NCBI RefSeq assembly: GCF_036365525.1 | Contig: NC_090409.1 | Location: 39,566,437 to 39,630,436 of the forward strand | Length of the DNA: 64,000 nucleotides | Direction: 5' to 3' | Source: Heterodontus francisci | Lineage: Eukaryota | In this document: one piece after another, positions 12,292 to 59,408 of the stretch | Layout: the number at the start of each line of letters is the position of its first letter | Numbering within the stretch: position 1 is the first letter of the stretch | Notes under the pieces: model-generated | Told to the model about the DNA's origin: nothing | The model's database searches: none | The model's input: the letters and a program-made list of their open reading frames with translations, nothing else | Translations under genes and position numbers: made by a program

Positions 12292-12352
12292 TCAAAGGAC
12301 ATCATTCGATGCTGCATTTTGATTGATGCTGTATCGATTTTGAACACAATTC
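12292..12352 (-). CDS. Gene A exon 6: short cytoplasmic tail (W)NCVQNRYSINQNAASNDVL*
   Basis: Acceptor ttttttctctcccag, phase 2 matching the TM exon. Homologous to copy B 53313-53487, but a 1-nt deletion gives TGA at 12294-12292. Confidence 0.7.
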
Positions 12353-12796
12353 CTGGGAGAGAAAAAAACAGCAGAGTTCAGGTTACATTAAAAGAATCCA
12401 ACACTTTGTACAAGTGTGTAAAGGAGCTGTTCAGGAACACAGACCGATTAAATTACACTCAACATCCTGGGCACCAATGGCAGCTGGAAAATGGGTCACA
12501 GGAGCTGCACAGTGATGGAGCACAGAGTGTAGAGGAGAGGAGGCTTATAGAGGAGGCAATGGGCAAGAGCTGGACACTCCACAGGACCTGTGCTGACCGA
12601 GGCACCAGACCAATAGAAAAATGACAGCTCACCTCAACATTGGAGATTAAGAAGAATTGATGAGGATCTCGGTTAACACTGAGCTGAAGATGATGGGGAT
12701 CAGATCAGACAGGAGGAGGCTGGGAATGTCCGTACTCTCCAGACTGATCCTGAATTATAGAGAGGAGTCACAGATGGACAGGATATTCCCTGATGT

Positions 12797-13153
12797 TAAG
12801 TTCAGTTCAGTTCAGTGATACAGCACTGAAACAGGCCCTTCGGCCCACCGAGTCTGTGCCGACCATCAACCACCCATTTATACTAATCCTACAGTAATTC
12901 CATATTCCTACCACATCCCCACCTGTCCCTATATTTCCCTACCACCTACCTATACTCGGGGCAATTACTAATGGCCAATTTACCTATCAACCTGCAAGTC
13001 TTTGGCATGTGGGAGGAAACCGGAGCACCCGGAGGAAACCCACGCAGACACAGGGAGAACATGCAAACTCCACACAGGCAGTACCCAGAATTAAACCAGG
13101 GTCGCTAGAGCTGTGAGGCTGCGGTGCTAACCACTGCGCCACTGTGCTGCCCC
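12797..13153 (-). mobile_element. tRNA-derived V-SINE (HE1-like) with CR1-derived tail, specific to copy A intron 5
   Basis: The minus strand has a tRNA-like head, V-core ggagtttgcatgttctccc...gggtttcctccgggtgctccggtttcctccc, and a (tgaac)n tail. The empty site is present in copy B near 53925. Confidence 0.9.
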
Positions 13154-13794
13154 TGTGATCAAACCCGACCCAGCAGTGACCAAACAGGCTGACGGAGGCA
13201 GAAATATCGAAATGGGCGAGAGTCAGTGATCAGAGTTAGAGAGTCTGCAATAGTTCCCCCTCCCCACTGGCAGGTGGGTAAGAGGTGGGCAGGGAGATGT
13301 GGATGTTGAGGGAGACAGAGAAATGCAGCATATCCTTGTTAGTGATCAAAACCACAGATGGCCGGGTCACAGGGGGTGGTTTGAAAAATGTAACCACAAA
13401 TAGAGATTGAACAACAACATGCATTTATATAGCTCCTTTATCATCCCAAGGTGCTTCACAGGAGCAATTATCAAACAGAATGTGTGCACTGAGATATTAG
13501 GGCTGGTGATGTAGGTTTTCAGGCGGGTCTGAAAGGAGGAGGGACAGAGAGGGACAGAGAGGTTTATTGATGGAATTCTAGAACCCAGGACTCAGGCAGC
13601 TAAAGGCACAGCCGCCAATGGTGGAGTGATGGAAATCAGGGGGGGTGCACAAGAGGCCAGAATTGGAGCAGCACAGAGATCAGGGAGGAGATTAGAGATA
13701 GGGAGGGGTGAGGCAATAGAGGGATTTGAACAGGAGGATGAATGTAGGTCAGTGAGAACAGGGGTGATAGGGGAACGGCTGCTCCCTATCCACC

Positions 13795-14105
13795 CTAAGT
13801 TGAAGGGTCAGTTACGAGGGGTCACAAGTTTAAGGTGAGGGGCAGGAGGTTTAAGGGGGATTTGAGGAAGAACTTTTTTTTACCCAGAGGGTGGTGACGG
13901 TCTGGAATGCTCTGCCTGGGAGGGTGGTAGACACATGTTGCCTCACATCCTTTAAAAAGTACCTGGATGAGCACGTCATAACATTCAAGGCTATGGGCCA
14001 AGTGCTGACAAATGGGATTAGGTAGACAGGTCAGGTGTTTTAATGCATCGGTACAGACTCGATGGGCCGAAGGGCCTCTTCTGCACTGTTTTATTCTGTG
14101 ATTTA
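13795..14105 (+). mobile_element. CR1 3' fragment (same subfamily as 60220-60730), flanked by L2-like remnants
   Basis: Near-identical to 60410-60725; typical CR1 3' end. Confidence 0.85.
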
Positions 14106-14385
14106 GTGATGGGTAAATGGGACTTGGTGTGAGTTAGGATACGGGGCAGCAGAATTTTAGATGAGCTCAAGTTTATGGAGAGTGTCAGGTGGAATTGGCC
14201 GGGGGAACATTGGAATAGTCGAGTCCAGAGATAACAAAGGCACGGATGAGGATTCATGAAATGCAGCATTGAAACATCCCACACAGCACAAAGTGTATCA
14301 GTGTACACAACATTTCCACAACACCAAATATAATAAAACAAAACTAGAAATAACAATGGGAACTGCAGAACATTCCAGAACTCAC

Positions 14386-14488
14386 CATCTTTGTTTCTTT
14401 CGAATAATGAAAAGGACAATTACAGCAATGAGAAGAAGAAGAATTGCGATGACCAATCCAACTACTGCTCCAGTAGAGAGTCCAGGAT
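14386..14488 (-). CDS. Gene A exon 5: transmembrane exon DPGLSTGAVVGLVIAILLLLIAVIVLFIIRKKQR(W)
   Basis: Acceptor ctgtctctag, donor GTGAGT, phase 1 to 2. A 22-aa hydrophobic run is followed by a basic stop-transfer sequence. Confidence 0.88.
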
Positions 14489-14833
14489 CTAGAGACAGAA
14501 TGAAGCCGTTAACAGACTGGGACACACTAACAAAACTAACAGAGAACTTCAGAATGTCACACAGATACAGTCACCGATACATGCTTTCCAAACGAGATAA
14601 CTGGACACTGCCCAGCAGCCTCCCTTCAATTAAACCCAACATCCCGCTGAAATAGGAGCGGAAATTTTAAAATAATTTGCCGGTTGGGAAATCCACGGGA
14701 TTGGGTGGAACGCGGTTTATACACAGATCAATATTACTCCTCATTGACTTCATACTGAGGACTCCCGGGGTCACCCCCACCTGACTGTGTACGAGAGCTA
14801 AAAACACATGCAGTAGTTTAGAAACTGATTTAC

Positions 14834-14887
14834 CTGGTACAGGTGTGTCCGGTACAGGTGTGTCCGGTACAGGTGTACGAGCTCGCT
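14834..14887 (-). CDS. Gene A exon 4: Pro/Thr stalk ERARTPVPDTPVPDTPVP
   Basis: Acceptor ttttcttcag, donor GTAAAT, 54 nt, phase 1-1, internal 15-nt repeat. Conserved as an island in copy B. Confidence 0.8.
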
Positions 14888-15359
14888 CTGAAGAAAACAT
14901 CATGTGTTCAGTATTGTGTGTGAAACAAACTGCAGAAATATTCAAAGACTCTATCGGGCTGTAGGGAAACACATCCCGGGAGGAACGAGACTCGGGTCAA
15001 ACTGATCAGGAAGGATCAGGAACAGGGTCGGCAGAGTGAAAAATCCAACAGGATTGCATTCACTTTGAGGGGGAGAATGGAAGTTTTCCCAGAGTTACCC
15101 CCAGCAGGATCATTCCCAGCAGACTACACCCACCTGTGGAGAGAATTCCCACAGGAACCTGGGCCGACTGGGATGCACTTTCAAGGTAAGTGCACTGGGT
15201 CTTGTAAAGGCTGCCTGAGAGGTGCTATGGGCCCCACCTCCTGCACCCCAACATCTGGAGACAGATGTAGCACGTTTCTGGAGAGTGAGAGCAGCTTGAT
15301 AGCACCGTGGGTTTGCCTTTGCTGTGTCCTGATTCGATGTCTGGGTCACAGCCAGTGGG

Positions 15360-15720
15360 CCGTTCAGTTTTATTCTTGTTTTTCTTTCTAGTAGTTTGAT
15401 ACAAACTGATTGAAGTGGCCGAGCAGGTCAGAGGGCAGTTAAAAGGCAACCAGGTTAATGTGGGACAGGAGTCACATATAGACCAGACCGGGTAAGGACG
15501 GCAGGTTTCCTTCCCTAGAGGGACATCAGTGAACCAGTTGGGTTTTACAACAATCCAACAGCTTCATGGTCACTTTTATTGGGACCAACTTTATATTTCC
15601 AGATTTATTTTAAACTGAATTTCAATTCTGAAAGTGCCATGGTGGGATTTGAACTCACGTTCTCTGGATTATTAGTCCAGGCCTCTGGATTACTAGTCTA
15701 GTAACATAACCACTGCACTA
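15360..15720 (-). mobile_element. tRNA-headed SINE-like repeat (related copies at 45780-46050, 47630-47830, 48950-49075, 57300-57445, 63815-64000)
   Basis: Shared motifs gactagtaatccagagg, gttcaaatcccacc and aaggaaa.ctgccgtccttacc.ggtctgg across the copies. Confidence 0.75.
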
Positions 15721-15776
15721 CCGTACCCATAAAATCAGAGAGTAAATGCAGAATACCTGAAACAGAAACCTCTCAC

Positions 15777-16109
15777 CTGTGACAGAGAGATGAACATCTT
15801 GATGAAAGACTGGAGTCTCCCTCTGTTGAATCTCACATCGATACTCATTCTGGTCTGACTGCCTGAGGTCAGAGATCATAATTGACCAGTTGCCTTGTTC
15901 CAGTTGATCTTTGAACAGGTTTGTTCTGTTTCTGAACCGTGGGTCTTGTACTGTTAAATCATCGTTCCCATCGATAAATTTGTGTAAAACTCCATTCCTG
16001 AATATCCACCAAATTACCTGCAACTCAGAGACTGGGACATTCCCTTTGTAGATACAGGGCAGCACAACCTGCTCCCCAAGGAACCCAGAAACTGGGACAG
16101 GCGAGTAAC
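15777..16109 (-). CDS. Gene A exon 3: Ig V-set domain of B7/butyrophilin type (CD276/ICOSL/MOG-like)
   Basis: 333-nt phase 1-1 exon (cttttccag / GTGAGA). Contains GEQVVLPC, the C-strand W, QDPRFRNRTNLF..QLEQGNWS, and D.NEYRC, which match the B7-family IgV signature. Confidence 0.93.
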
Positions 16110-16660
16110 CTGGAAAAGATTGGAAGAATTTATCCACAGATATAACCTCCCTGCTGGTACATTCCATCCCAAACTTCACATGGTTACACTGCGATGCTTG
16201 ATTTACAAGAAGCACTGATCAGTAACTCACTGCTTTCATTTCTGTGGGAAGGTTAAAGGTCAGGCATTAAGGGCCTTCAACTAAAACCAGCTTGTGCTGG
16301 ATATTTGTATCCACAGAGCAGCTGGACAGCACTTTGAATCGTGTGTTTCCCATTGTACACATGCTGGGAGAACACATCAGGATATTGGTCACCCTGCCCA
16401 CCTCCCCCCTTTGGGAGAACAATGACAGACTGGGGGTGCACAATGTGAGGTGGAGCTCAGGAGCAGAAAACTGACCCTGAAATGTAAAGACAGAAATGGG
16501 TGGGGGAGGGGGTACCCGAGGATGTGGAAAGGGCTTTGGACAGGTTGGGGGGGGGGGGGGGGACAATGACGGACAAGTACACTGTGTAGGGGGTGAGGCA
16601 GCACCTGATGGTCTGAAAGGGGCCGAGGCAACGTGGATCCTCACCTCCCTCCACCACTAA

Positions 16661-18250
16661 CACAAGAAATGGGAGCAGGAGTAGGCCATTCAGCCCCTCA
16701 AGTCTGCCCTGCAGTTCATTAAGATTATGGCGGATCTGTCCCAGGCTTCAACTCCTCTTTCGGGCCTGCTCCGCATAACCCTCAGCTCCAAGATTTCAAA
16801 AATCTCCTTATATATCTCTTGAAATAGTGACCCAGCCTCCACAACTCTGAGGTAGAGAATTCCAGACATTCACCACCCTGGGAGAGAAGAAATTCCTTCC
16901 CATCTCAGTTTTAAATGTGTGACCCCTTATTCTGCAACTATGTCCCCTCGTTCGAGATTCCCCCACCAGCAGGAACATATTCTCAACATCGACCCTGTCA
17001 AGCCCCCTTAGAATCTTATATGTTTCTATAAGATCACCTCTCATTCATCTAAACTTCCATGAATAAAGGCCTAACCTGTTTAGCCGTTCTTGATAAAACT
17101 ACCCCGTCATTAAAGGAATCAGCCTCGTAAATCTTTTCTGAACTGCCCCCAATGCTAGTTATATCCTTCCTTAAATACAGGGACCAAAACTGTTAACAGT
17201 ACTCCAGGTGTGGCCTCACCAACACCCTGTACAGTTGTAACAAGACTTCCCTATTTTTAAACTCTATCCCCCAAGCAATAAAGACCAAAATTCCATCTGC
17301 CTTCCTAATTATTTGCTGCACCTACATCCTAACCTTTTGTGTTTCATGTACAAGAACACCCAGATCCCTCTGTACTGCAGTATTTTGTAGTCTTTCTCCA
17401 TCTAAATAATAATCTGCCTTTTTATTCTTCCTGCCAAAGTGGATGACCTTTCACTTTCCCACATTGAACTCCATCTGCCAAGTTTTGCCCACTCACTTAA
17501 CCTATCTATATCCCTTTGCAGATTCTGTGTCCTCATCACAACATGCCTTTCCACCTATTTTTGCATCGTCAGCAAATTTGGACACACTACACTCTGTCCC
17601 TTCCTCCAAGTCATTGATATAGATAGTAAATAGTTGAGGCCCTCGGACCGATCCTTGTGGAACCCCACTAGTTACAACTTTCCAATCTGAAAAAGACTCA
17701 TCAACCCTAACTCTGTGCCTTCTGTGTGTTAGCCAATCCTCAATCCATGCCAACACATTACCCCAATACCCTGAGCTTGTATTTTGTGCAATAACCTTTT
17801 ATGTGGCACCTTATTGAACACATTCTGAAAATCCAAATACACAACATCTACAGGTTCCTCTTTATCCACTCTGCTTGTTATATCCTCAAAGAACTCGAAC
17901 AAATTTGTCAAACATGATTTCCCTTTCATAAAACCATGTTGACTCTGTTTGATTGCATTATGTTTTTTCCAAATGTCCTGCTATTTCTTCCTTCATAATG
18001 GATTCTAGTATTTTCCCAATGACAGATGTTAAGCTAACTGGTCCATAATTTCCTGCTTTCTGTCTCCCTCCTTTCTTGAAGAGGGGGGGGGGTCACATTA
18101 GCGGTTTTCCAATCCGCTGGTACCCGACTGGAATCCAGTGAGTTTTGGTATATTATGATCAATGCCTCCACTATCTCTGCAGCCACTTCCTTTAAAACCC
18201 TTGGATGCAGGCCATCAGGTCCTGGCGACTTGTCTGCCTTTTGTCCCAAG
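16661..18250 (-). mobile_element. Decayed CR1 LINE (RT to 3' end) in copy A intron 2, absent from copy B
   Basis: KSPGPDGLHPRVLKE, KSCLTNL, GVPQGSV, KFADD across broken ORFs. Copy B reads ccaccactaa-cctgtcagacc at 58371-58391 without it. Confidence 0.92.
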
Positions 18251-18592
18251 AGTTTGTCCAGCAGCTTTATCGGCTTAAAAGTCTGCCACTGCTCATCAAC
18301 TGACTTTACTTTTCGTCTATTTTCCCAGCCCGAACCTGTCAGACCTTGCTCCTCAACCCGATACGGCCAGACTTTGCCCCCTCCCTGGACCCAAAACCCA
18401 ATCCTCAGTCCTGATGACCCTACTCCCCATGCTCAGAGGCAATTCCCAGTTCTATTCCAGACTCCTGATCCCAGTGCTCAGGACCCCATCCCAGTACCAC
18501 TGGATCCCAGTCACCCATCCCAGTGTTACCGAGTGTTACTCAGTGTCCACATTCCACTGTTCACATCACAGGGATTATTCTGAAGACATTAA

Positions 18593-19764
18593 GAGCAGTG
18601 GATGTGGTGTATATGGATTTTAGCAAGGCGTTTGATAAGGTTCCCCATGGTAGGCTCATTCAGAAAGTAAGGAGGCATGGGATACAGGGAAAGTTGGCTG
18701 CATGGATACAAAATTGGCTGGCCCATGGAAGACAGAGGGTGGTAGTAGATGGAAAGTATTCAACATGGAGCTCGGTGACCAGTGGTGTTCCGCAGGGATC
18801 TGTTCTGGGACCTCTGCTCTTTGTGATTTTTATAAATGACTTGGGTGAGGAAGTTGAAGGCTGGGTTAGCAAGTTTGCCGATGACACGAAGGTTGCTGGA
18901 GTTGTGGATAGTGTGGAAGGCTGTTGTAGGTTGCAACGGGACATTGACAGGATGCAGAGCTGGGCTGAGAAGTGGCAGATGGAGTTCAACCTGGAAAAGT
19001 GTGAAGTGATTCATTTTGGAAGGTCGAATTTGAATACAGAATACAGGCTTAAAGACAGGATTCTTGGCAGTGTGGAGGAACAGAGGGATCTTGGGGTCCA
19101 TGTCCATAGATCGCTCAAAGTTGCCACCCAAGTTGATAGGGTTGTTAAGAAGGCGTATGGTGTGTTGGCTTTCATTAACAAGGGGATTGAGTTTAAGAGC
19201 CGTGAGGTTATGCTGCAGCTCTATAAGGCCCTGGTTCGACCACACTTGGAATATTGTGTTCAGTTCTGGTCGCCTCATTATAGGAAGGATGTGGAAGCTT
19301 TATTGAGGGTGCAGAGGAGATTTACCAGGATGCTGCCTGGACTGGAGGGCATGTCTTACGAAGAAAGATTGAGGGAGCTCAGGCTTTTCTCATTGGAGCG
19401 AAGATGGATGAGAGGTGACTTGATAGAGGGGTACAAGATGATGAGAGGCATAGATAGAGTGGATAGCCAGAGACTTTTTCCCAGGGTGGAAAGGGCTATT
19501 ACCAGGGGGCATAATTTTAAGGTGATTGGAGGAAGGTTTCGGGGAGATGTCAGAGGTAGGTTCTTTACACAGAGAGTGGTGGGTGCGTGGAATGCGTTGC
19601 CAGTGGTGGTAGTAGAAGCGGATACATTAGGGACATTTAAGCAACTCTTGGATAGGTACATGGATGACAGCAGAATGAAGGGTAGGTAGTTAGTTTGATC
19701 TTCGAGTAGGTTAAAGGTTCGGCACAACATCGTGGGCCGAAGGGCCTGTACTGTGCGATGTTCT
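18593..19764 (+). mobile_element. Young 5'-truncated CR1 with uninterrupted RT frame and ATTAA target-site duplication
   Basis: ORF 18523-19689 is open. ATTAA occurs at 18588-18592 and 19765-19769. The empty site gacattaactgcc is in copy B near 58620. Confidence 0.95.
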
Positions 19765-20089
19765 ATTAACTGCCTTCCTTTCAGGTCTCATGATCATTAT
19801 GTGTAATGTGAACCGACTGTGTCCACTCCCTCAATGGGCCCACTCACAGTGAACACAGCACCTTAAAGCAAAATGAATTCCTGATATAATGAAGACTATT
19901 CCCCAGTAATATACACATTACTGATTTCAGTCCCAGACACCCAGACAAATGTTCTTTCCAGGAGATAGCTAACTGCAGTCTGTAATAATTCACAAGGTTA
20001 ACACCATCCAGGAAGATAAATCCTGATATAATCCATGTCACCAGCAGCCCCGAGCTCTGCTGAAATGTGAGAGCAGTCACAGCGTTTAC

Positions 20090-20153
20090 CTGAAACAGCA
20101 GCAACAGCATTTAGCAGCAGCAGCAGGAGGAGGGGTTTCTGTAAGTTGGGTCC
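20090..20153 (-). CDS. Gene A exon 2: signal peptide GPNLQKPLLLLLLLNAVAAVS(G)
   Basis: Acceptor tttttgttgcag, donor GTAAAC, 64 nt, phase 0 to 1, joining in frame to the V exon. Confidence 0.88.
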
Positions 20154-20229
20154 CTGCAACAAAAAAACACAGTTACCCCCCTTTACCACAGTTTCTTGCT
20201 GCTCATGTCCATTACTGAACCGGGACAGG

Positions 20230-20590
20230 ACACAGTCCATGGTCCCTCTCCCCATTACTGACCCCCCTCCCTCCCGGCTCTGAGACACATTGAGACCGGG
20301 AGCAGCCCTGACACAGTCCATGGTCCCACTCCCCATTACTGACCCCCCTCCCCCCGGCTCTGAGACACATTGAGACCGGGAACAGCCCTGACACAGTCCA
20401 TGGTCCCTCTCCCCATTACTGACCTCCCTCCCTCCCGGCTCTGAGACACATTTAGACCGGGAGCAGCCCTGACACAGTCCATGGTCCCGCTCCCCATTAC
20501 TGACCCCCCTCCCTCCCTCCCGGCTCTGAGACACATTGAGACCGGGAGCAGCCCTGACACAGCCCATGGTCCCTCTCCCCATTACTGACC
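20230..20590. repeat. 81-bp VNTR in intron 1 of gene A (about 4.5 units)
   Basis: Same unit as 27875-30655 and 59085-59365. Confidence 0.95.
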
Positions 20591-20616
20591 GCCTGGGTGT
20601 GAGACACTGACAGTAC

Positions 20617-20637
20617 CTGCAGTGCTTTTCCATCCAT
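20617..20637 (-). CDS. Gene A exon 1 coding part MDGKALQ
   Basis: ATG GAT GGA AAA GCA CTG CAG followed by gtactg, phase 0 matching exon 2. Conserved in three copies. Spliced CDS is 636 nt, 211 aa. Confidence 0.75.
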
Positions 20638-20849
20638 TGCCCCGATTCTGGATCATCCCCTCCCGGAGACAGGAGACTGGGAATCAGCTGCTCAGCTGTT
20701 GTCAGATAACAGTGCCAGTTATACCTTCCAACACAAGGACCAAGTGGGCGGGGTCGAGACAGAGGGGGAAAAAAAATCAGTCCCGGTCCCTGTGTCGGAG
20801 TCCAGACAGAGGGGGAAATCAGTCTCGGCCACTGCGCCTGTGTCGATGT

Positions 20850-25330: not shown

Positions 25331-26218
25331 AACTCCAGTGTGTATAGCCAGGAGGTTCCTTGCAGGTCCACCACCGCTCCCTGCAGGTAATGAATGAGTT
25401 GCATTTGGAAATATGACGTCAGGGAATACAGCTTCAGCCAATGGGAAGCGGGTGGGTGGGGTGTAAATCATCACTGCCTTGATTGACATGGCGGTGGGCC
25501 AATAGGAATACAGTGTGCAGCAGCTGAGTGTGACAGTTTGGTGTGACATCGGAGTGTCTCTTGCCCGCTCCCTTCGTCACTCTCCCACTTCGCCACTTCT
25601 CTGGGCAGGCAATGGCGAGCAGCCACTGCACAAGGTCCTCCCGCCATAGTATTCTGAGAGTGTGGCTCCCTCTCAGGCTGGATGCACCAAAATATGGTTT
25701 TGCTGTGCAATGCAAATGTATGTTGCATGCAAGAGGGAATGGAAGGGTTGTGAGACAAATCACTTTCAGTATTGCAGGAAACCGATATATTTTGCACTTT
25801 CTGGAATGTCGATTTGGAATATTTTTGTAATGTATTTTTCACAGATTTTTATGAATAAAGTACACTTTTGGGGAAAAAAAAACAGGGAGCAGCTGGGACT
25901 GACGGGATGCAGCAGTGAGAAGGCGGGTGCCAGAGAGAGCGGGATATTAATAATTTATGATATATCTTAGATTGCAACTAATGGTAAAAAGAAAGCCTGC
26001 CCTCAGCTGGACAGAATCAAAGCAAATGTGACTTTTTCCAAAAATTTACTTGATTCATATAAATCTGTAAAAAAATACATTTCAATACAGTGCAAACCAG
26101 TTCCAAATTGACATTCCAGAAAGTGCAAAAGAAATCAGGTTTTTTCAAGACAGAGGATGAGTTGCCTCACAACCCTTCCATTCCATTTGACACACAAATT
26201 GACTGGAATTATAAACTC

Positions 26219-27560
26219 AAAACCTTTGACCTCGCCAGCCAACGTGATCTCTTCAGACTATTGGCAAAGATCAGATGTCCACCAAAGCTACTAAGTATCA
26301 TCACCTCATTCCATGACAATATGAAAGGCACAATTCAGCATAGCGGCACCTCATCAGACCCCTTTCCTATCCTGAGTGGCGTGAAACAGGGCTGTGTTCT
26401 CGCACCTACACTGTTTGGGATCTTCTTCTCCCTGCTGCTCTCACATGTGTTCAAGTCTTCAGAAGAAGGAATTTTCCTCCACACAAGATCAGGGGGCATG
26501 TTGTTCAACCTTGCCCGTCTAAGAGCCAAGACCAAAGTACGGAAGGTCCTCATCAGGGAACTCCTCTTTGCTGACGATGCTGCTTTAACATCTCACACTG
26601 AAGAGTGTCTGCATATACTCATCGACAGGATTGCGGCTGTCTGCAATGAATTTGGCCTAACCATTAGCCTCAAGAAAATGAACATCATGGGACAGGACGT
26701 CAGAAATGCTCCATCCATTAATATCGGTGACCACTCTCTGGAAGTGGTTCAAGAGTTCACCTACCTAGGCTCAACTGTCACCAGTAACTTGTCTCTAGAT
26801 GCAGAAATCAACAAGCGCATGGGAAAGGCTTCCACTGCTGTGTCCGGACTCGCCAAGAGAGTGTGGGAAAATGGCGCACTGACACGGAACACAAAAGTCC
26901 GAGTATATCAAGCCTGTGTCATCAGTACCTTGCTGTATGGCAGCGAGGCCTGGACAACGTATGTCAGCCAAGAGCGACGTCTCAATTCATTCCATCTTCG
27001 CTGCCTTCGGAGAATACTTGGCATCAGGTGGCAGGACTATATCTCCAACACAGAAGTCCTCGAGGCGGCCAACATCCCCAGCTTATACACACTACTGAGT
27101 CAGCGGCGCTTGAGATGGCTTGGCCATGTGAGCCGCATGGAAGATGGCAGGATCCCCAAAGACACATTGTACAGTGAGCTAGTCACTGGTATCAGACCCA
27201 CCGGCCGTCCATGGCTCCGCTATAAAGACGTCTGCAAACGTGACATGAAATCCTGTGACATTGACCACAAGTCGTGGGAGTCACTTGCCAGCGATTACCA
27301 GAGCTGACGGGCAGCCATAAAGGCGGGGCTGAAGTGTGGCGAGTCGAAGAGACTTAGCAGTTGGCAGGAAAAAAGACAGAAGCGCAAGGAGAGAGCCAAC
27401 TGTGTAACAGCCCCGACAACCAATTTTATCTGCAGCACCTGTGGAAGAGTCTGTCACTCTAGAATAGGCCTTTATCGCCACTCCAGGCGCTGCTCCACAA
27501 ACCACTGACCACATCCAGGCGCTTACCCATTGTCTCTCGAGACAAGGGGGTCAAAGAAGA
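26219..27560 (+). mobile_element. RTE-clade LINE, 5'-truncated, RT frame open
   Basis: GVKQGCVLAPTLF, ELLFADD, FTYLGS, LLYGSEAW, RRLRWLGHV.RMED.RIPK. It interrupts a segment that is intact at 21615-21645. Confidence 0.93.
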
Positions 27561-27874: not shown

Positions 27875-30655
27875 CCCCATTACTGACCTCCCGGCTCTGA
27901 GACACATTGAGACCGGGAGCAGCCCTGACACAGTCCATGGTCCCTCTCCCCATTACTGACCTCCCCTCCCTCCCAGCTCTGAGACACATTGAGACCGGGA
28001 GCAGCCCTGACACAGTCCATGGTCCCTCTCCCCATTACTGACCCCCCTCCCTCCCGGCTCTGAGACACATTGAGACCGGGAGCAGCCCTGACACAGTCCA
28101 TGGTCCCACTCCCCATTACTGACCCCCCTCCCTCCCGGCTCTGAGACACATTGAGACCGGGAGCAGCCCTGACACAGTCCATGGTCCCTCTCCCCATTAC
28201 TGACCCCCCTCCCTCCCGGCTCTGAGACACATTGAGACCGGGAGCAGCCCTGACACAGTCCATGGTCCCTCTCCCCATTACTGACCCCCCTCCCTCCCGG
28301 CTCTGAGACACATTGAGACCGGGAGCAGCCCTGACACAGTCCATGGTCCCACTCCCCATTACTGACCCTCCTCCCTCCCGGCTCTGAGACACATTGAGAC
28401 CGGGAGCAGCCCTGACACAGTCCATGGTCCCACTCCCCATTACTGACCCCCCTCCCTCCCAGCTCTGAGACACATTGAGACCGGGAGCAGCCCTGACACA
28501 GTCCATGGTCCCTCTCCCCATGACTGACCTCCCCTCCCTCCCGGCTCTGAGACACATTGAGACCGGGAGCAGCCCTGACACAGTCCATGGTCCCACTCCC
28601 CATTACTGACCCCCCTCCCTCCCAGCTCTGAGACACATTGAGACCGGGAGCAGCCCTGACACAGTCCATGGTCCCTCTCCCCATGACTGACCTCCCCTCC
28701 CTCCCGGCTCTGAGACACATTGAGACCGGGAGCAGCCCTGACACAGTCCATGGTCCCTCTCCCCATTACTGACCTCCCCTCCCTCCCGGCTCTGAGACAC
28801 ATTGAGACCAGGAGCAGCCCTGACACAGTCCATGGTCCCTCTCCCCATTACTGACCCCCCTCCCACCCCGCTCTGAGACACATTGAGACCGGGAGCAGCC
28901 CTGACACAGTCCATGGTCCCACTCCCCATTACTGACCCCCCTCCCTCCCGGCTCTGAGACACACTGAGACCGGGAGCAGCCCTGACACAGTCCATGGTCC
29001 CACTCCCCATTACTGACCCCCCTCCCTCCCGGCTCTGAGACACATTGAGACCGGGAGCAGCCCTGACACAGTCCATGGTCCCTCTCCCCATTACTGACCT
29101 CCCCTCCCTCCCGGCTCTGAGACACATTGAGACCGGGAGCAGCCCTGACACAGTCCATGGTCCCTCTCCCCATTACTGACCCTCCTCCCTCCCGGCTCTG
29201 AGACACATTGAGACCGGGAGCAGCCCTGACACAGTCCATGGTCCCTCTCCCCATTACTGACCCCCCTCCCTCCCGGCTCTGAGACACATTGAGACCGGGA
29301 GCAGCCCTGACACAGTCCATGGTCCCACTCCCCATTACTGACCCCCCTCCCTCCCGGCTCTGAGACACATTGAGACCGGGAGCAGCCCTGACACAGTCCA
29401 TGGTCCCTCTCCCCATTACTGACCCCTCTCCCTCGCGGCTCTGAGACACATTGAGACCGGGAGCAGCCCTGACACAGTCCATGGTCCCTCTCCCCATTAC
29501 TGACCCCTCTCCCTCCCGGCTCTGAGACACATTGAGACCGGGAGCAGCCCTGACACAGTCCATGGTCCCACTCCCCATTACTGACCCCCCTCCCGGCTCT
29601 GAGACACATTGAGACCAGGAGCAGCCCTGACACAGTCCATGGTCCCTCTCCCCATTACTGACCCCCCTCCCGGCTCTGAGACACATTGAGACCAGGAGCA
29701 GCCCTGACACAGTCCATGGTCCCTCTCCCCATTACTGACCCCTCTCCCTCCCGGCTCTGAGACACATTGAGACCGGGAGCAGCCCTGACACAGTCCATGG
29801 TCCCTCTCCCCATTACTGACCCCCCTCCCACCCCGCTCTGAGACACATTGAGACCGGGAGCAGCCCTGACACAGTCCATGGTCCCACTCCCCATTACTGA
29901 CCCCCCTCCCTCCCGGCTCTGAGACACATTGAGACCGGGAGCAGCCCTGACACAGTCCATGGTCCCACTCCCCATTACTGACCCCCCTCCCACCCCGCTC
30001 TGAGACACATTGAGACCGGGAGCAGCCCTGACACAGTCCATGGTCCCTCTCCCCATTACTGACCCCCCTCCCGGCTCTGAGACACATTGAGACCGGGAGC
30101 AGCCCTGACACAGTCCATGGTCCCACTCCCCATTACTGACCCCCCTCCCTCCCGGCCCTGACACAGTCCATGGTCCCGCTCCCCATTACTGACCCCCCTC
30201 CCTCCCGGCTCTGAGACACATTGAGACCGGGAGCAGCCCTGACACAGTCCATGGTCCCACTCCCCATTACTGACCCCCCTCCCTCCCGGCCCTGACACAG
30301 TCCATGGTCCCTCTCCCCATTACTGACCCCCCTCCCTCCCGGCTCTGAGACACATTGAGACCGGGAGCAGCCCTGACACAGTCCATGGTCCCTCTCCCCA
30401 TTACTGACCCCCCTCCCTCCCGGCTCTGAGACACATTGAGACCGGGAGCAGCCCTGACACAGTCCATGGTCCCTCTCCCCATTACTGACCCCCCTCCCTC
30501 CCGGCTCTGAGACACATTGAGACCGGGAGCAGCCCTGACACAGTCCATGGTCCCTCTCCCCATTACTGACCCCCCTCCCTCCCGGCTCTGAGACACATTG
30601 AGACCGGGAGCAGCCCTGACACAGTCCATGGTCCCTCTCCCCATTACTGACCCCC
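27875..30655. repeat. Expanded 81-bp VNTR (about 34 units)
   Basis: Period 81 (e.g. tccatgg at 30301 and 30382); 27-aa periodic ORFs on the minus strand. Confidence 0.97.
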
Positions 30656-30678
30656 CGGGTGTGAGACACTGACAATAC

Positions 30679-30699
30679 CTGCAACACTTTTCCATCCAT
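30679..30699 (-). CDS. Third copy of coding exon 1 (MDGKVLQ): alternative first exon of gene A or remnant of a truncated paralog
   Basis: ATG GAT GGA AAA GTG TTG CAG followed by gtattg and then the same intron-1 VNTR. No exon 2 is seen between it and 20153. Confidence 0.55.
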
Positions 30700-31757: not shown

Positions 31758-31787
31758 ATTATATTTGGTGTTGTGGAAATGTTGTGT

Positions 31788-32180: not shown

Positions 32181-32304
32181 TTAATTTCATTAAATTCAAA
32201 CAAGGAAGAAGGAAAGAGTTTTCTATGTTCCACATAATTTAGAAAGGGAGATGACTGAAATATTTGTCCTGATTTTCACCTGGGTGGGTGGGAAAGTGCG
32301 GTGG

Positions 32305-47620: not shown

Positions 47621-47863
47621 CATGCAATAAAAGTGACCATGAAGCTGTTGGATTGTTGTAAAACCCAACTAGTTCACTAATGTCCCTCGAGGGAAGGAAA
47701 GCTGCCGTCCTTACCCGGTCTGGTCTTTATGTGACTCCAGTCCCACATTAACCTGGGCGACTTTTAACTGCCCTCTTACCTGCTCGGCCACTTCAATCAG
47801 TTTGTATCAAACCACGAGAAAGAAAAAGAATAAAACCTACCTGAAATGTTTCAAACCACCTCT

Positions 47864-48012
47864 TGTATTGAAGGGGTTCAGTCAGATCAACCCAGAGTCT
47901 GGCTCCTGTATTAAAGGGATTCGGTCAGATCAACCCAGAGTCTGGTTCCTGTATTAAAGTGGTTCAGTCAGATCAACCCAGAGTCTGGTTCCTGTATTAA
48001 AGGGGTTCAGCC
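47864..48012 (-). repeat. About 3.5 diverged units of the 43-bp satellite in inverted orientation
   Basis: tgtattaaaggggttcagtcagatcaacccagagtctggttcc is the reverse complement of the unit at 1-5984. Confidence 0.9.
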
Positions 48013-48544
48013 AGTAGATGGCCCCACTGTCTAGTTCAACCGGCCAATAGAAACTGAGCAACAGCGCCAAGAGGGCGGCATTCCAGAGACACCTTGAAGC
48101 AACTTTGAAAACAAGCCTTGCATTTAAATAGCACCTTCCAGCATCTCAGGCGTTCCCAAAGTGCTTCATAGCCGATGAAGTACTGCCTATTTTTGAAGCA
48201 GTCACTGTTGTAATGTAGAAAACGTGGCAGCCAAATTTGTGGACAGCAAGATCCCACAAACATCAATGTGATACTGACCAGGTCATCTGGAATACTGTGG
48301 GGGAGCGGGAGCACAGGGGCAGTATCAAGGGAGTGCTGTGTTGTCGGAAGGGCAGTACTGAGGGAGTACTACACGATTGGAGGCACAGTGCGAAGGGAGT
48401 GCCACACTGTCAGAGGTGCTGTCATTTGGATGAGTCATTAAACTGAGGGCTCCATCTGCCCACTCAAATGGATGTAAAAGAGTTCTCCGCAGATGCTGCC
48501 AGGACTGCTGAGTGTTTCCAGCACTTTTTGGTTTTATTATTATT

Positions 48545-53000: not shown

Positions 53001-53312
53001 ACAGGGAGTGATCAATGGGTTTCACAGCTGAAGTTGGTCCTGTGTGTTCCTGAGACTGGGTTTGGACACAGTGTGTATCAGTAACACTGAGATATAATGT
53101 AATATCAATCAGACAGGTTTTCTAGTAAAGGGACAACACTGTCACTGGGTGATTATCTCAAGACTCTGCTGGTCAGAGGGGTTTGTGCAGAGTGGGAAGT
53201 GATTGTTGATCCCAATCCTGAGCTCAGACTTTCCACCAGGATTCACTGGATAACCACAATACTGGGCTGATTTTCCCCTCCCTGACCCAGGCTCAGTGCA
53301 GTGTAAACTCAG

Positions 53313-53487
53313 TTAGTGCTGGACAGCCCCGTTCCCCAGAAGGTTTTGTTCTCCAGCTGCTCCATTCTGATGCTCAGGTGCTGTTGTGAAACATGGGACC
53401 TTGTGACCTGAACAAGTCACCCCTGTCAAAGGGACGACATTAGATGCTTCATTTTGATTGATGCTGTGATGATTTTGAACACAATTC
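53313..53487 (-). CDS. Gene B last exon: cytoplasmic tail (W)NCVQNHHSINQNEASNVVPLTGVTCSGHKVPCFTTAPEHQNGAAGEQNLLGNGAVQH*
   Basis: Acceptor ttttctctcccag, phase 2, open to TAA at 53315-53313. Confidence 0.78.
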
Positions 53488-54646
53488 CTGGGAGAGAAAA
53501 ATCAGCAGAGTTTATGTTACATTAAAAGAATCCAACACTTTGTACAAGTGTGTAAAGGAGCTGTTCAGGAGCACAGACCAATTAAATTACACTCAACATC
53601 CTGGGCACCAATGGCAGCTGGAAAATGGGTCACAGGAGCTGCACGGTGATGGAGCACAGAGTGTAGAGGAGAGGAGGCTTATAGAGGAGGCAATGGGCAA
53701 GAGCTGGACACTCCATGGGACCTGTGCTGACCGAGGCACCAGACCAATAGAAAAATGACAACTCACCTCAACATTGGAGATTAAGAAGAATTGATGAAGA
53801 TCTCGGTTAACACTGAGCTGAAGATGATGGGGATCAGATCAGACAGGAGGAGGCTGGTAATGTCCGTACTCTCCAGACTGATCCTGAATTATTGAGAGGA
53901 GCCACAGATGGACAGGATATTCCCGGATGTGATCAAACCCGACCCAGCAGTGACCAAACAGGCTGACGGAGGCAGAAATATTGTGATGGGGGAAAAGAGT
54001 CAGAGGACAGAGTTAGAGAATCTGCAATAGTTTCCCCCCCACAACTGGCAGATGGGTAAGAGATGGGCAGGGAGATGTGGATGTTGAGGGAGGCAGAGAA
54101 ATGCAACGTATTTTATTGTTAGTGATCAAAACCACTGATGGTCAGGTCAAGGGATGAGAGTGGACACAGGGTATATCACAGAAGCGGAGGTAGGTGGTAT
54201 TAGAGTGATGGGAGAGAATATGGAGTCAGAAGCTCAGCTCAGGGTCTGATAGGACTCCGAGGTTGTGAACAGTCTGGTTCAGCCTCAGACAGTGGCCAGG
54301 GAGGGGGATGGAGTCAGTGACTGGGGAACAGAGCAAGGATCAGAGGCTGGTGAAAAGTCAGGAGAGGGGACAAGTGGATTTTAGGTGTAGGCTGGTGAGT
54401 TGTTTGCTGCAGAGATTAGGCGAGTGTCTATTAACTGTGTGATAGAGGGAGCCGCACATTCCTGCTCTTCACCTTCAGTTCAGCAGCTAGAGGATGACAA
54501 CAAGCTGGAAGTGACTGGATAATGCAGCATTGAAACATCCTACACAGCACAAAGTGTATCAGTGCACACAACATTTCCACAACACCAAATATAATAAAAC
54601 AAAACTAGAATTAACAATGGGAACTGCAGATCATTCCAGAACTCAC

Positions 54647-54761
54647 CATCTTTGTCGCTTTAGGAAAACCAGAATTATGCAAAGAAGAACAAGAATTATG
54701 CAAATAAGAACAAGAATTGCGATGACCAATCCAACTACTGCTCCAGTAGAGGGTCCAGGAG
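54647..54761 (-). CDS. Gene B transmembrane exon APGPSTGAVVGLVIAILVLICIILVLLCIILVFLKRQR(W)
   Basis: Acceptor ctgtctttag, donor GTGAGT, phase 1 to 2; matches ORF 54643-54831. Confidence 0.88.
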
Positions 54762-55049
54762 CTAAAGACAGAATGAAGCCGTTAACAGACTGGGACACAC
54801 TAACAAAACTAACAGCAGAGACAGTCAGCACCTAGTGTTTCAGAACCATCCCCAGTACAAACACATCCCTGGTCAATTCTAGTCCTGGAGGAATGTGGGA
54901 GACTAAATATCAATAATCTCACACACACACACACTGCCCCACAGTCTGATAGATACATGCTTTCCAATGGAGATAACTGGACACTGACCAGCAGCAGCTT
55001 CCCTTCAATTAAACCCAACAGCCCGCTGAAATAGAGCAGGAATTTTAAA

Positions 55050-55560
55050 CTCGTGAAAATCACAGGATTGGATGGATGCTGGTTTACATCCAGCTCCTGG
55101 AGTTCCCGGAAAGATGGGAAAAGATTTGGAAGGTGACAACACATTAAAGGATTTGGGAGGGGAAAGGGAGGTAGGAGATGGGACAGTAGTTTCCGAAGGT
55201 TAAGGGTTATTTTTTTTGAGGATCGGGATGATCTCGCCAGATTTACAGGAGAGGCAGATAACACCTGGAGACAAGCATTTACAATATCGACTAACATTAC
55301 AACCAAGAGGGAAAGGTGGGTGTTCGGTAGTTTAGCAGGAACAGGATCAAGGGAACAGGAGGTGGGTCTCATGGACATGATGAGCTCAAACAGGGAATGA
55401 GTGGAAATAGGAGAGAAACCAGAGAAAGATGGGAGTTCAGGGTTAGGGCAGGATTATAGGAAGTTTGGCCAGGTGTGCTAGTGGAAGGGAGGGACAGGAC
55501 AGAGGCAGCTGATCGAATGGTCTCGAACGTAGTGACAGAACAGTCCATGAGCTCCTCGCA
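55050..55560 (-). mobile_element. L2-type LINE fragment in a copy B intron
   Basis: PTSCSLDPVPAKL, followed by a degraded KK..L...NYRPIS.LPF-like segment. Confidence 0.7.
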
Positions 55561-55642
55561 CGTATTGTTGGACTTATTACCCATTCAGTGTGAGCATATG
55601 TAAAATCTAAAAACACATGCAGTAGTTTAGAAACAGATTTAC

Positions 55643-55696
55643 CTGGTACAGGTGTGTTCAGTACAGGTGTGTTCAGTACAGGTGTACGAGTTCGCT
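55643..55696 (-). CDS. Gene B stalk exon homolog ERTRTPVLNTPVLNTPVP with mutated splice acceptor (probably skipped)
   Basis: Aligned to 14834-14887. The donor is intact, but acceptor ttcttCAG has become ttcttTGG. Confidence 0.5.
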
Positions 55697-55769
55697 CCAA
55701 AGAAAACATCATGTGTTTAGTATTGTGTGTGACGGTAGACAGGCAATTGCTCACACCTGAAGATCTAAT

Positions 55770-57300
55770 ACATAGTTTACAACAAAAATGCATTTCTTTA
55801 ATGTAAAAAATCCCAGCAAGAAAAGTGTTCCAACTGTAGCTAACAAAAGAAATCAAGGATTGTATTGGAGCAAAGGAAGAGGCGTATAAAGTTGCCAAAA
55901 AAATGTTAATCCTGAGGATTGGGAACATTTCAAAATTCTGCAAAGGAGGACCGGGAAGAAGTTTAAGAAAGGGAAAATAGAATACGAGAGTAAATTAGCG
56001 AGAAACATAAAAACAGACTGTAAAAGCTTCTCCAGATCTGTAAAACAGAAAAGATTAGCAAAGACAAATGTGGGTCCATTACAAACAGACTTAGGAGAAT
56101 TTATAATTGGGAACAAGGGCGGCACAGTGGTTAACACTGCAGCCTCACAGCTCCAGTGACCCGGGTTCAGTCTGGGTACCGCCTGTGCAGAGTTTGCAAG
56201 CTCTCTCTCTGACCATGTGGGTTTCCTCCGGGTGCTCCGGTTTCCTTGCGGGTTAATAGGTAAATAGGCCATTGTAAAAAAAAAAATTACCCCTAGCGTA
56301 GGTAGATAGTAGGAGAATTGAGGGGATGTGAGAAGGAAAATGGGATTAATGTAAATGGGTGGTTAATGGTCAGCGCGGACTCAGTGGGCCGAAGGGTTTG
56401 TTTTGGTGCTGTATCTCTCTTTGATTCTAAGGAAATGGCAGAGAAAATAAAACAAATACTTTGTGTCTGTCTTCACAGAGGAAAATACTAAAAAGCTCCC
56501 AGAAATAATGGAGAATCAAGGGACTAGTGTCAAGAAGGAACTGCAAGATATTAATATTCATTTAAAAAAAAGTACAAGAGAAATTAGTGGGACTGAAAGT
56601 AGATAAATCCTCTGGACCTGATGATCTATATCCCAGCATGTTGAAAGAGGTGGCTGTAGAGATGGTTGATGCATTAGTGGTCATCTTTCAAAATTCTGTA
56701 GACTCTGGAATGGTTCCCGCAGACTGGAAGGTGGTAAATGTAACCCAACTGTTTAAGAAAGGAGGGAGAGAGAAAACAGGGAACTACAGACCTGTTAGCC
56801 TAGACATCAGTCATAGGGAAAATGCTAGAATCTACAATAAAGGATGTGATAACTGGACACTTTGATAATAATGGTAGGATTGGGCAGAGTCAACCTGGAT
56901 TTATGAAAGGGAAGTCATGGTTTATAAACCTGTTGGAGTTTTTTTTTTGAGATGTAACTAACAGAATAGAAAAGGGAGGGAAGAGGTGGATGTGCTGTAA
57001 CTGGATTTTCAGAAAGCTTCTGAAAAAGTCCCACACAAGAGGTTGGTAAACAAAATGAGAACACATGGGATTGGAGTGAATATACTGGCAGGGATTGAGA
57101 ACTGGTTAACAGACAGAAAACAGAGAGTCGGAATAAATGGGTCATTTCCAGGTTGGCAGGTTGTTACAAGTGGGATACTACAAGGAACAGTGCTTGGGCC
57201 CAGCTATTCACAATCTAGATCAATGATTTGGATGTGGAGATCAATATTTTCAATTTTGCAGATGACACAAAACTAGGTGGAAGTGAGAGTTGCAAGGAGG
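55770..57300 (+). mobile_element. Decayed CR1 in copy B intron 3, containing a nested V-SINE
   Basis: LKVDKSSGPDDLYP, NYRPVSL, WLTDRKQRVGING, FADD. Confidence 0.88.
56117..56428 (+). mobile_element. V-SINE (HE1-like) nested in CR1
   Basis: Head gggcggcacagtggttaacactgcagcctcacagctcc, core gggtttcctccgggtgctccggtttcc, tail gggccgaaggg. Confidence 0.85.
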
Positions 57301-57500
57301 GCATGGGACCAGCTTTATATTTCCAAAATTATTTCAAACTGAATTCAAATTCTGAAAGTGCCATGGTGGGATTTGAACTCAAGTTCTCTGGATCATTAGT
57401 CCAGGCCTCTGGATTACTAGTCTAGTAACATAACCACTGCACTACCGTACCCATAAAATCAGAGAGTAAATGCAGAATACCTGAAACAGAAACCTCTCAC

Positions 57501-57833
57501 CTGTTACAAAGAGATGAACATCTTGATGAAAGACTGGAGTCTCCCTCTGTTGAATCTCACACCGATACTCATTCTGGTCTGACTGCCTGAGGTCAGAGAT
57601 CATAACTGACCAGTTGCCTTGTTCCAGTTGATCTTTGAACAGGTTTGTTCTGTTTCTGAACTGCGGGTCTTGTAGTGTCAAATCATCGTTCCCATTGACA
57701 AAATTATGTAAAACTCCACGATTGGATATCCACCAAATTACCTGTGAATCAGAGACTGGGACATTCTCTTTGTAGATACAGGGCAGCACAACCTGCTCCC
57801 CAATGAACCCAGAAACTGGGACAGACGAGTAAC
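57501..57833 (-). CDS. Gene B Ig V-set domain exon (B7/butyrophilin type)
   Basis: 333-nt phase 1-1 exon. Both Cys and the Trp are retained; 15 of 111 aa differ from copy A by my count. Confidence 0.93.
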
Positions 57834-58944
57834 CTGGAAAAGATTGAAAGTATTTATCCACAGATATAACCTCCCTGCTGGTACATTCCATCCCAAGCTT
57901 CACATGATTACACTGCGATGCTTGATTTACAAGAAGCACTGATCAGTAACTCACTGCTTTCATTTCTGTGGGAAGGTTAAAGGTCAGGCATTAAGGACCT
58001 TCAACTAAAACCAGCTTGTGCTGGATATTTGTATCCACAGAGCAGCTGGACAGCACTTTGAATCGTGTGTTTCCCATTGTACACATGCTGGGAGAACACA
58101 TCAGGATATTGGTCACCCTGCCCACCTCCCCCCTTTGGGAGAACAATGACAGACTGGGGGTGCACAATGTGAGGTGGAGCTCAGGAGCAGAAAACTGACC
58201 CTGAAATGTAAAGACAGGAACAGATGGGGGAGGGGGTACCCGAGGATGTGGAAAGGGCTTTGGACAGGTTGGGGGGGGGGGGACAATGACGGACGAGTAC
58301 ACTGTGTCGGGGGTGAGGCAGCACCTGATGGTCTGAAAGGGGCCGAGGCAATGTGGATCCTCATCTCCCTCCACCACTAACCTGTCAGACCTTGCTCCTC
58401 ACCCCAATACGGCCAGACTCTGCCCCCTCCCAGGACCCAAAACCCAATGCCCAGTCCTGATGACCCTACTCCCCATGCTCAGAGGCAATTCCCAGTTCTA
58501 TTTGATCCAGGACTGTCCCAGATTCCTGATCCCAGTGCTCAGGACCCCATCCCAGTGTCACCGAGTGTTGCTCAGTGTCCAGATTCCACTGTTCACATCA
58601 CAGGGGTTAATCTGAAGACATTAACTGCCTTCCTTTCAGGTCTCATGATCATTATGTGTAATGTGAACCGACTGTGTCCACTTCCTCAATGGGCCCACTC
58701 ACAGTGAACACAGCACCTCAAAGCAAGATGAATTCCTGATATAATGAAGACTATTCCCCAGTAATATACACATTACTGATTTCAGTCCCAGACACCCAGA
58801 CAAATGTTCTTTCCAGGAGACAGCTAACTGCACTCTGTATAAATTCACAAGGTTAGCACCATCCAGGAAGATCAATCCTGATATAATCCATGTCACCAGC
58901 AGCCCCGAGCTCTGCTGAAATGTGAGAGCAGTCACAGCGTTTAC

Positions 58945-59008
58945 CTGAAACAGCAGCAACAGCATTTAACAGCAGCAGCAGGAGGAGGAGTTTCTGTAAG
59001 TTGGGTCC
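58945..59008 (-). CDS. Gene B exon 2: signal peptide GPNLQKLLLLLLLLNAVAAVS(G)
   Basis: Acceptor ttcttgttgcag, donor GTAAAC, 64 nt. Confidence 0.88.
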
Positions 59009-59084
59009 CTGCAACAAGAAAACACAGTTACCCCCCTTTACCACAGTTTCTTGCTGCTCATGTCCATTTCTGAACCGGGACAGG

Positions 59085-59365
59085 ACACAGTCCATGGTCC
59101 CTCTCCCCATTACTGACCCCCCTCCCTCCCGGCTCTGAGACACATTGAGACCGGGAGCAGCCCTGACACAGTCCATGGTCCCTCTCCCCATTACTGACCC
59201 CCCTCCCTCCCGGCTCTGAGACACATTGAGACTGGGAGCAGCCCTAACACAGTCCATGGTCCCTCTCCCCATTACTGACCCCCCTCCCTCCCGGCTCTGA
59301 GGCACATTGAGACCGGGAGCAGCCCTAACACAGTCCATGGTCCCTCTCCCCATTACTGACCCCCC
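59085..59365. repeat. 81-bp VNTR in intron 1 of gene B (about 3.5 units)
   Basis: Same unit as 27875-30655. Confidence 0.95.
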
Positions 59366-59387
59366 CGGTGTGAGACACTGACAATAC

Positions 59388-59408
59388 CTGCAGCGCTTTT
59401 CCATCCAT
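59388..59408 (-). CDS. Gene B exon 1 coding part MDGKALQ
   Basis: ATG GAT GGA AAA GCG CTG CAG followed by gtattg. Spliced product is 235 aa without the stalk exon, 253 aa with it. Confidence 0.75.

Follow-up and report, generated by a model that had tools for sequence, protein, structure and literature searches.

What kind of gene has been duplicated at this shark locus, carrying one variable-type immunoglobulin (IgV) domain and no constant-type (IgC) domain, and is it already known under another name? The window, i.e., the whole stretch of DNA analysed here, comprises 64,000 nucleotides (nt) of the horn shark Heterodontus francisci (assembly GCF_036365525.1, contig NC_090409.1, forward positions 39,566,437–39,630,436) without any N. 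It contains two tandem paralogues, copies A and B, both on the minus strand and ∼41 kb apart. Each has six exons, which encode a start codon, a leader, one IgV domain, a Thr/Pro stalk, a transmembrane (TM) segment and a tail. We read them as members of a shark-specific multigene family of B7-like surface and soluble ligands that is duplicated per lineage and exchanges segments between copies, and we regard this as the probable answer, with some reserve. The original prediction, made from the letters of the window alone, saw here a duplicated and diversifying family of B7/butyrophilin-like receptors. That observation is confirmed, while the interpretation built on it is supported in part.

Gene Structure of the Two Copies

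Comparison of the window with itself showed a same-strand segmental duplication in which blocks at 12116–20672 match blocks at 53250–59443 with 84–97% identity. The duplicated blocks are interrupted by copy-specific repeats. Every exon boundary, frame and length was checked by script in both copies. The limits first proposed for the locus, 12292–59408, match exactly the final base of the copy A stop codon (12292) and the A of the copy B ATG (59408). The two complete exon chains are also present as predicted and their intron phases 0, 1, 1, 1, 2 hold, but the stalk acceptor of copy B is GG, which had gone unreported.

Copy A has canonical AG/GT dinucleotides at all sites and follows the same series of intron phases. 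Exon 1 occurs in a proximal form (20637..20617, MDGKALQ, donor CAG/gtactg; this and all following exons are on the minus strand) and in a distal alternative (30699..30679, ATG plus six codons, MDGKVLQ, donor CAG/gtattg). The leader exon 2 (20153..20090, 64 nt, phase 0 to 1) encodes GPNLQKPLLLLLLLNAVAAVS and is followed by the IgV exon (16109..15777, 333 nt, phase 1/1), the stalk exon (14887..14834, 54 nt, ERARTPVPDTPVPDTPVP), the TM exon (14488..14386, 103 nt, phase 1 to 2) and the coding part of the tail exon (12352..12292), which reads WNCVQNRYSINQNAASNDVL up to the stop codon. Splicing copy A from the distal exon 1 gives exact identity to RefSeq protein P0165 (211 aa), which uses this exon and is named ‘V-set domain-containing T-cell activation inhibitor 1-like isoform X1’ (VTCN1-like). 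Copy A therefore reaches to 30.7 kb. Located 10 kb upstream of copy A, this third copy of exon 1 (30679–30699) comes with a separate ATTGG box on its upstream side (within 30679–30860) and has no gene body of its own. The copy A tail is truncated by a 1-nt deletion relative to copy B and to other sharks, and the ancestral C-terminus, ending in TTAPEHQNGAAGEQNLLGNGAVQH, is legible downstream of the stop in another frame. Copy A is inferred to be functional, with a shortened tail.

Copy B starts with an exon 1 (59408..59388) that again reads MDGKALQ and has an ATTGG box (reverse CCAAT) ∼135 bp upstream. The leader exon 2 (59008..58945) and the IgV exon (57833..57501) follow, the latter encoding a protein segment 86% identical to that of copy A. 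At the homologue of the stalk exon (55696..55643) the acceptor is mutated, with tttgg in place of ttcag, so that this exon is probably skipped. The TM exon (54761..54647, 115 nt) is of a ‘long’ type with four more codons than in copy A, and the coding part of the tail exon (53487..53313) encodes the full ancestral tail ending in TTAPEHQNGAAGEQNLLGNGAVQH before the stop. The frame is open with the stalk exon (253 aa) or without it (235 aa). Otherwise intact paralogues that lack the stalk are annotated (P0171, P0172, and P0175). Copy B would be either such a stalk-less member or a young pseudogene.

Protein Type and Relatives of the V Domain

The deduced product is a small type I membrane protein with a split signal peptide, a B7-type IgV domain, a mucin-like stalk of Thr/Pro repeats, an uncharged TM segment and a short tail. 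The V motif on which the family assignment had been based was found in the V exon as QDPRFRNRTNLFKDQLEQGNWS..ISDL..SDQNEYRC. Pfam reported only V-set, both in the V exon (6.6e-14) and in the full-length members P0165, P0168, and P0175. The nine longest non-exon minus-strand open reading frames (ORFs) within both genes matched no Pfam family. An intact IgC exon is therefore absent from the two genes, and tblastn of the window returned two V exons only. Together with RNA that joins V to stalk to TM (see below), this agrees with the claim that no IgC exon is present. A B30.2 exon is likewise missing as stated; there is no SPRY match and the proteins stop 25–62 residues past the TM segment.

A family profile was built from 40 members and scored against PDB chains. 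The best match was the IgV domain of VTCN1/B7-H4 (4gos; 2.4e-19, 73 bits), followed by PD-L1 (∼55 bits, ∼1e-13), CD276 (∼37–39 bits per V domain), SCN4B (7dtd_B; 38 bits, 1e-08, across V and TM), MOG (36 bits), and CD80/CD86 (31 bits). In the AlphaFold2 (AF2) model the V domain has a pLDDT >90, the stalk is disordered and the TM segment is a single long helix. Foldseek matched this model to the IgV domains of PD-L1 and B7-H4 with TM-scores of 0.79–0.86. Both the ranking and the predicted fold thus place the V domain in the B7 family, as had been proposed.

VTCN1 (B7-H4/B7x) is the best single-domain match also in structure (TM-score 0.84, 28% identity) and, like the shark proteins, is of type I and ends in a very short tail. 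For VTCN1, too, no receptor is known in mammals (PMC6735664). VTCN1 is, however, a single-copy gene encoding IgV plus IgC, whereas the shark family is multi-copy, has no IgC domain, and adds a Thr/Pro repeat stalk, a conserved C-terminal motif, soluble forms and two-V models. With PD-L1, CD276 and the wider B7 group the shark proteins share the IgV profile and fold, a V domain encoded by a phase 1/1 exon, and a front-sheet binding face that varies. The N-terminal IgV domain is thus of B7 sequence type and fold, but the membrane-proximal IgC domain by which B7 ligands are defined is missing. Butyrophilins and BTNL proteins have IgV, IgC and usually B30.2 (PRY/SPRY), while the shark family has neither of the latter two and gave no C-set or SPRY match.

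MOG is a single gene linked to the major histocompatibility complex, with a second hydrophobic segment. It offers a precedent for a lone B7/butyrophilin-type V domain on a membrane anchor, and NCBI names most horn shark members ‘MOG-like’. It is not the closest relative, nor is there one-to-one orthology: MOG scores 36 bits against 73 for VTCN1, and the shark genes are present in at least 11 copies that form a species-specific clade in the family tree rooted on teleost and frog relatives. A lone B7-type V domain in an expanded, lineage-specific cluster of the immunoglobulin superfamily (IgSF) is nevertheless of a kind already known, as in MOG.

The layout of V, TM and tail could also be that of a non-immune adhesion or accessory membrane protein like MPZ or the sodium-channel beta subunits, in which case the likeness to B7 would reflect shared V ancestry. 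The architecture is the same as in SCN4B and MPZ, SCN4B matches V and TM at 1e-08, and several members carry the NCBI name ‘sodium channel subunit beta-4-like’. An abundant structural protein would also be compatible with the very high RNA depth of one sample. Yet the 38 bits of SCN4B are about half the 73 bits of VTCN1, lie below PD-L1 and are about level with mouse CD276, and only the V-TM-tail layout is common to the two groups. Fast lineage turnover, module shuffling and a variable front face would, as we see it, also be unexpected for a conserved housekeeping subunit. An accessory role of this type is in our view quite unlikely.

No relation to antigen-receptor-like VJ domains (NKp30, UrIg, T-cell receptor (TCR) or immunoglobulin (Ig)) was apparent. 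The G strand reads TPVFHQDVHLSVT and does not contain the J-like G-x-G, and no Ig, TCR, or NKp30 chain was among the best 60 PDB matches. UrIg and UrIg2 (PMC12227049) are unrelated proteins of the VJ plus C1 type. The tail contains no immunoreceptor tyrosine-based inhibitory, activation or switch motif (ITIM, ITAM, or ITSM), and the TM segment no charged residue. The ancestral tail ends in TAPEHQ(D/N)GAAGEQNLLGN.(A/S/T)VQH, which is conserved in sharks of several orders.

Transcription and Splice Forms

Public runs holding words of the V exon were mapped as contigs on positions 53200–59199 (6,000 letters) at ≥90% likeness. In run X1, 3,130 contigs were placed, so many paralogues contribute. 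Contigs also drop rare variants, and the absence of a single letter is therefore weak evidence. For runs X1, X2, and X5 the summed depth was 28,000–372,000 in exon bins versus ∼100–300 in repeat-free intron bins, and these runs therefore contain RNA. Exon peaks exceed the depth over introns by a factor of 100 to 1000. Intron contigs are ∼99% identical to the window in X1 and X2 but only ∼92–93% in X5, which therefore represents a relative or a paralogous copy.

Read depth shows that the family is highly transcribed, and its splicing agrees with the prediction. RNA joints were seen from leader to V (57833/58945, in X1, X2, and X5), from V to stalk (57501/55696) and from stalk to TM (55643/54761), though paralogues may supply most of them. 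The TM to tail junction is represented by loose ends at 53488, and a loose end at 59013 in X5 joins exon-1-like sequence to the leader exon. None of the RNA contigs on this stretch contains an extra exon between V and TM, and an overlooked IgC exon was accordingly not found there.

A further joint, 55643/53487, connects stalk to tail and skips the TM exon. In this form the frame shifts in the tail exon and the protein ends in GIVFKIITASIKMKHLMSSL, which is exactly the end of the database isoforms P0167 and P0174. The alternative end is 20 residues long, conserved, and identical in two paralogues. The tail exon (53313–53487 in copy B, 12292–12352 in copy A) is thus read in two frames, as a cytoplasmic tail or as the end of the TM-skipped form. 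This form is predicted to be secreted, and the joint together with the matching isoforms suggests that secretion is part of the normal output of the family.

A Lineage-Specific Family in Sharks

When the protein databases were searched, as had been recommended, here with the V-bearing ORF, horn shark RefSeq proteins encoded on one 44-Mb contig were returned, at least 11 of them distinct. Relatives occur in 11 other shark species, and an identity of 60–74% is shown by those from Chiloscyllium punctatum, C. plagiosum, Hemiscyllium, Stegostoma, Rhincodon, Carcharodon, Cetorhinus, Scyliorhinus, Mustelus, and Pristiophorus. Family members carry automatic names as different as MOG-like, VTCN1-like, CD276 homolog, ICOS ligand-like and sodium channel subunit beta-4-like. 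Outside sharks, multi-V models of teleosts named ‘BTNL2-like’ and the HHLA2 of frogs come nearest, with 25–41% identity among the best 150 matches; those whose names were looked up show 33–39% identity.

In a tree of the V domains of family members, rooted on the teleost and frog relatives, all 13 horn shark V domains fall into a single clade (support 99/89), and the split between the shark family and the outgroups is supported at 97/96. Orthologue groups are shared within orders only. Such species-wise clades point to birth-and-death or concerted evolution. The claim that the family is lineage-specific therefore stands, with close relatives in sharks only, and no clean one-to-one orthologue among described single-V genes was found. 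The teleost ‘BTNL2-like / CD276 homolog / hemicentin-like’ arrays and amphibian HHLA2 are the next-nearest relatives and share with the shark family repeated B7-type V domains in expanded clusters, but they form a separate clade, have many V domains, some with C domains, and do not have the chassis of stalk, TM and tail.

The family had been described as single-V, which is true of both copies in the window but not of all members. Models with two V domains (leader-V-stalk-V-TM-tail) exist in the horn shark (P0210) and in five other sharks (P0001, P0003, P0004, P0006, P0008, and P0164), and are either real isoforms or read-through models of tandem genes. It had also been called undescribed. Indeed, we found no description of this family in the searchable literature, but RefSeq already models the genes under automatic names. 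The ESM Atlas returned generic single-V clusters only.

Some relatives carry a Cys-rich ectodomain of ∼85 residues with six conserved cysteines on the same TM and tail (P0212 and P0214 from Cetorhinus, P0213 from Hemiscyllium, P0025 from Rhincodon). It replaces the V domain, or precedes it in P0025. P0213 and P0025 keep the family leader and P0213 also the stalk. The Cys-rich ectodomain gave no Pfam match, one further homologue by word search and an AF2 model that was unusable at a pLDDT of 38.7, and the window contains no exon for it. In Cetorhinus maximus a gene model (P0022) joins a family member (V-stalk-TM) to a PRDM7/9-like protein, which suggests that a PRDM9-type gene adjoins the cluster in the basking shark.

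Probable Segment Exchange Between Copies

Every module has diverged between copies A and B as proposed, i.e., the V domain, the stalk, the TM segment, the tail, and the region upstream of exon 1. The V exon shows 23 differences in 333 bases and the flanking introns show 47 in 1507 (Fisher p = 0.0023). Of the 23 differences, 17 fall within 106 bp, from the BC loop to C'', and 13 of the 15 amino acid differences are states found in other paralogues. One patch of ∼106 bp with states shared among paralogues argues for a gene-conversion-like mosaic. Across the paralogues the variable columns cluster in BC, C-C'-C'', and F-G. Positions 87–115, with the N-glycosylation sites NRT and NWS (D-E region), are nearly fixed.

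Like the V patches, the remaining modules (stalk repeat number, TM type and tail type) are found in all combinations. Stalk repeats number 0–4 among paralogues. Short and long TM types are found with both tail starts (NCVQN or KENK) in all four combinations, and all four combinations of tail start and tail middle (GETRDLV or GHKVPCF) occur as well. The two tail middles correspond to a micro-inversion of ∼20 bp in the tail exon, at 12252–12273 in copy A (GETRDLV type) and 53386–53407 in copy B (GHKVPCF type). Both orientations are present in several horn shark paralogues, while other sharks have the GE.. type. The simplest reading of these sequence patterns would be that the copies exchange segments, whether or not selection acts on them. 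Some of the contrast between A and B is damage, namely the frameshifted tail of A and the lost stalk acceptor of B.

Proposed Role of the Family

In the reading that we favour, the family proteins would be cell-surface and soluble B7-like ligands with a partner on another cell. Contact would be made through the variable GFCC'C'' face and its loops; PD-L1 and CD80 contact their partners via the front sheet. The N-glycosylated D-E region would be held constant, and the conserved tail end, with its E-x-N-L-L, may direct sorting or endocytosis. Since the TM segment is uncharged and the tail poor in motifs, classical activating or inhibitory receptor signalling is less likely. The family would evolve by lineage-specific duplication combined with the exchange of V patches and of stalk, TM and tail modules.

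Several points weigh against this reading. An immune role is inferred from the B7-like fold. The placement among B7 members comes from a bit-score ranking of PDB chains and from fold comparison, and the family tree covers family members with teleost and frog outgroups. The tail motif matches no Pfam family and its reading as a dileucine signal is non-canonical. At positions 57721, 57725, and 57746 the RNA shows predominantly the letters of copy A, and the copy B letter at 57746, which encodes a Ser unique to B where strand C begins, occurs in none of the RNA contigs. The RNA evidence therefore stands for the family and not for copy B itself, and most of the junction evidence, with contigs accepted at ≥90%, may stem from paralogues. 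No protein matching copy B was returned by the database searches. Finally, comparison of A with B gives a dN/dS ratio of 0.76, from 17 nonsynonymous changes against 6 synonymous ones, which does not support positive selection. The word ‘diversifying’ in the original prediction is thus right in that the differences are real, but selection for diversity is unsupported and what we see is a gene-conversion-like mosaic plus damage.

Some of these points would be explained if the apparent diversification of A and B were largely neutral decay and gene conversion, with B a recent pseudogene and A partly disabled, which we consider quite possible, at somewhat below an even chance. Decay would account for the GG acceptor of the copy B stalk, the missing B letter at 57746, the lack of a B protein in the databases, and the 1-nt deletion that cuts the copy A tail. 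It would also fit a dN/dS of 0.76 and differences gathered in one 106-bp patch that reuses states from other paralogues. However, the frame of copy B is open across all exons with or without the stalk, the stalk-less paralogues P0171, P0172, and P0175 are annotated and intact, and the missing letter counts for little as contigs drop rare variants. Copy A, for its part, has a protein-coding model, and its letters are the prevailing ones in the RNA.

The proteins might instead be receptors, the variable V face recognising foreign or self ligands and the conserved tail signalling or driving uptake. They would then be similar to the families of variable IgSF receptors that fishes encode in the germline. 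Multiple copies expanded within lineages, variation concentrated in loops that resemble complementarity-determining regions, a tail end conserved across several shark orders, and the existence of soluble isoforms, as for many receptors, would all fit. But the PDB searches place the V domain nearest to B7 ligands and not to receptor-type V domains, the G strand has no J-like G-x-G, the TM segment carries no charge through which it could pair with an adaptor, and ITIM, ITAM and ITSM are all missing from the tail. Moreover, copy A lacks the conserved tail end, yet it is protein-coding in RefSeq (P0165) and the dominant RNA letters match it. Both the receptor function and the resemblance to the fish receptor families appear unlikely to us.

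A more far-reaching version of the ligand reading would have the family act as a germline-encoded, combinatorially shuffled set of B7-like ligands whose evolution is coupled to that of a partner family on lymphocytes, itself just as variable. Splicing would produce one-V, two-V and secreted forms, and other sharks would add Cys-rich heads. Butyrophilin and Skint molecules pair with gamma-delta TCRs in mammals, and the shark family might be likened to that pairing by analogy. We hold such a co-evolving set to be doubtful.

In mammals, responses of T cells and of gamma-delta T cells are under the control of B7 and butyrophilin molecules, whose early history is still poorly resolved. The present family shows sharks using a V domain of the VTCN1/PD-L1 type that has lost the C domain and sits on a mucin-like stalk, and that was then expanded into a fast-turning and highly expressed gene cluster with membrane, predicted secreted and two-V forms. 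The four or five automatic names are misleading, and the practical gain is a corrected description with a common name and unambiguous exon models. A partner receptor, if there is one, would be a new handle on lymphocyte regulation in the oldest jawed vertebrates.

Repeats in the Window

An 81-bp satellite lies directly behind each exon 1 copy and makes up all or most of intron 1. Immediately after the distal exon 1, in the long first intron of the P0165 model, it has ∼34 copies (27887..30656, minus strand, 2.8 kb). After the proximal exon 1 of copy A there are 4.4 copies (20229–20590), and 3.5 copies fill intron 1 of copy B (59085..59365, minus strand). An in-frame ATG in the last satellite unit (MDCV...) was considered as a start codon and rejected, as the RefSeq protein and the X5 loose end splice the upstream exon 1 to the leader.

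Four ORF fragments of the reverse transcriptase of a long interspersed nuclear element (LINE) are found at 10695–12050, 18523–19689, 26090–27307, and 38347–39785. The one at 18.5–19.7 kb lies in the intron between leader and V of copy A, which owes to it most of the length by which it exceeds that of copy B. Just downstream of the copy A V exon (∼15600–15720, minus strand) there is a putative tRNA-like head of a short interspersed nuclear element (..agtggttatgttactagactagtaatccagag..gttcaaatccc..).

A 43-bp satellite has 139 copies with a 95% match at 1–5984 and a patch of 3.6 copies in the opposite orientation at 47860–48014. A 19-bp minisatellite (315 copies, 32303–38355 and 39870–40135) yields long spurious minus-strand ORFs (SSPVTGFLTCYRVPHLLPG...), and its two arrays flank the LINE reverse-transcriptase fragment at 38347–39785.

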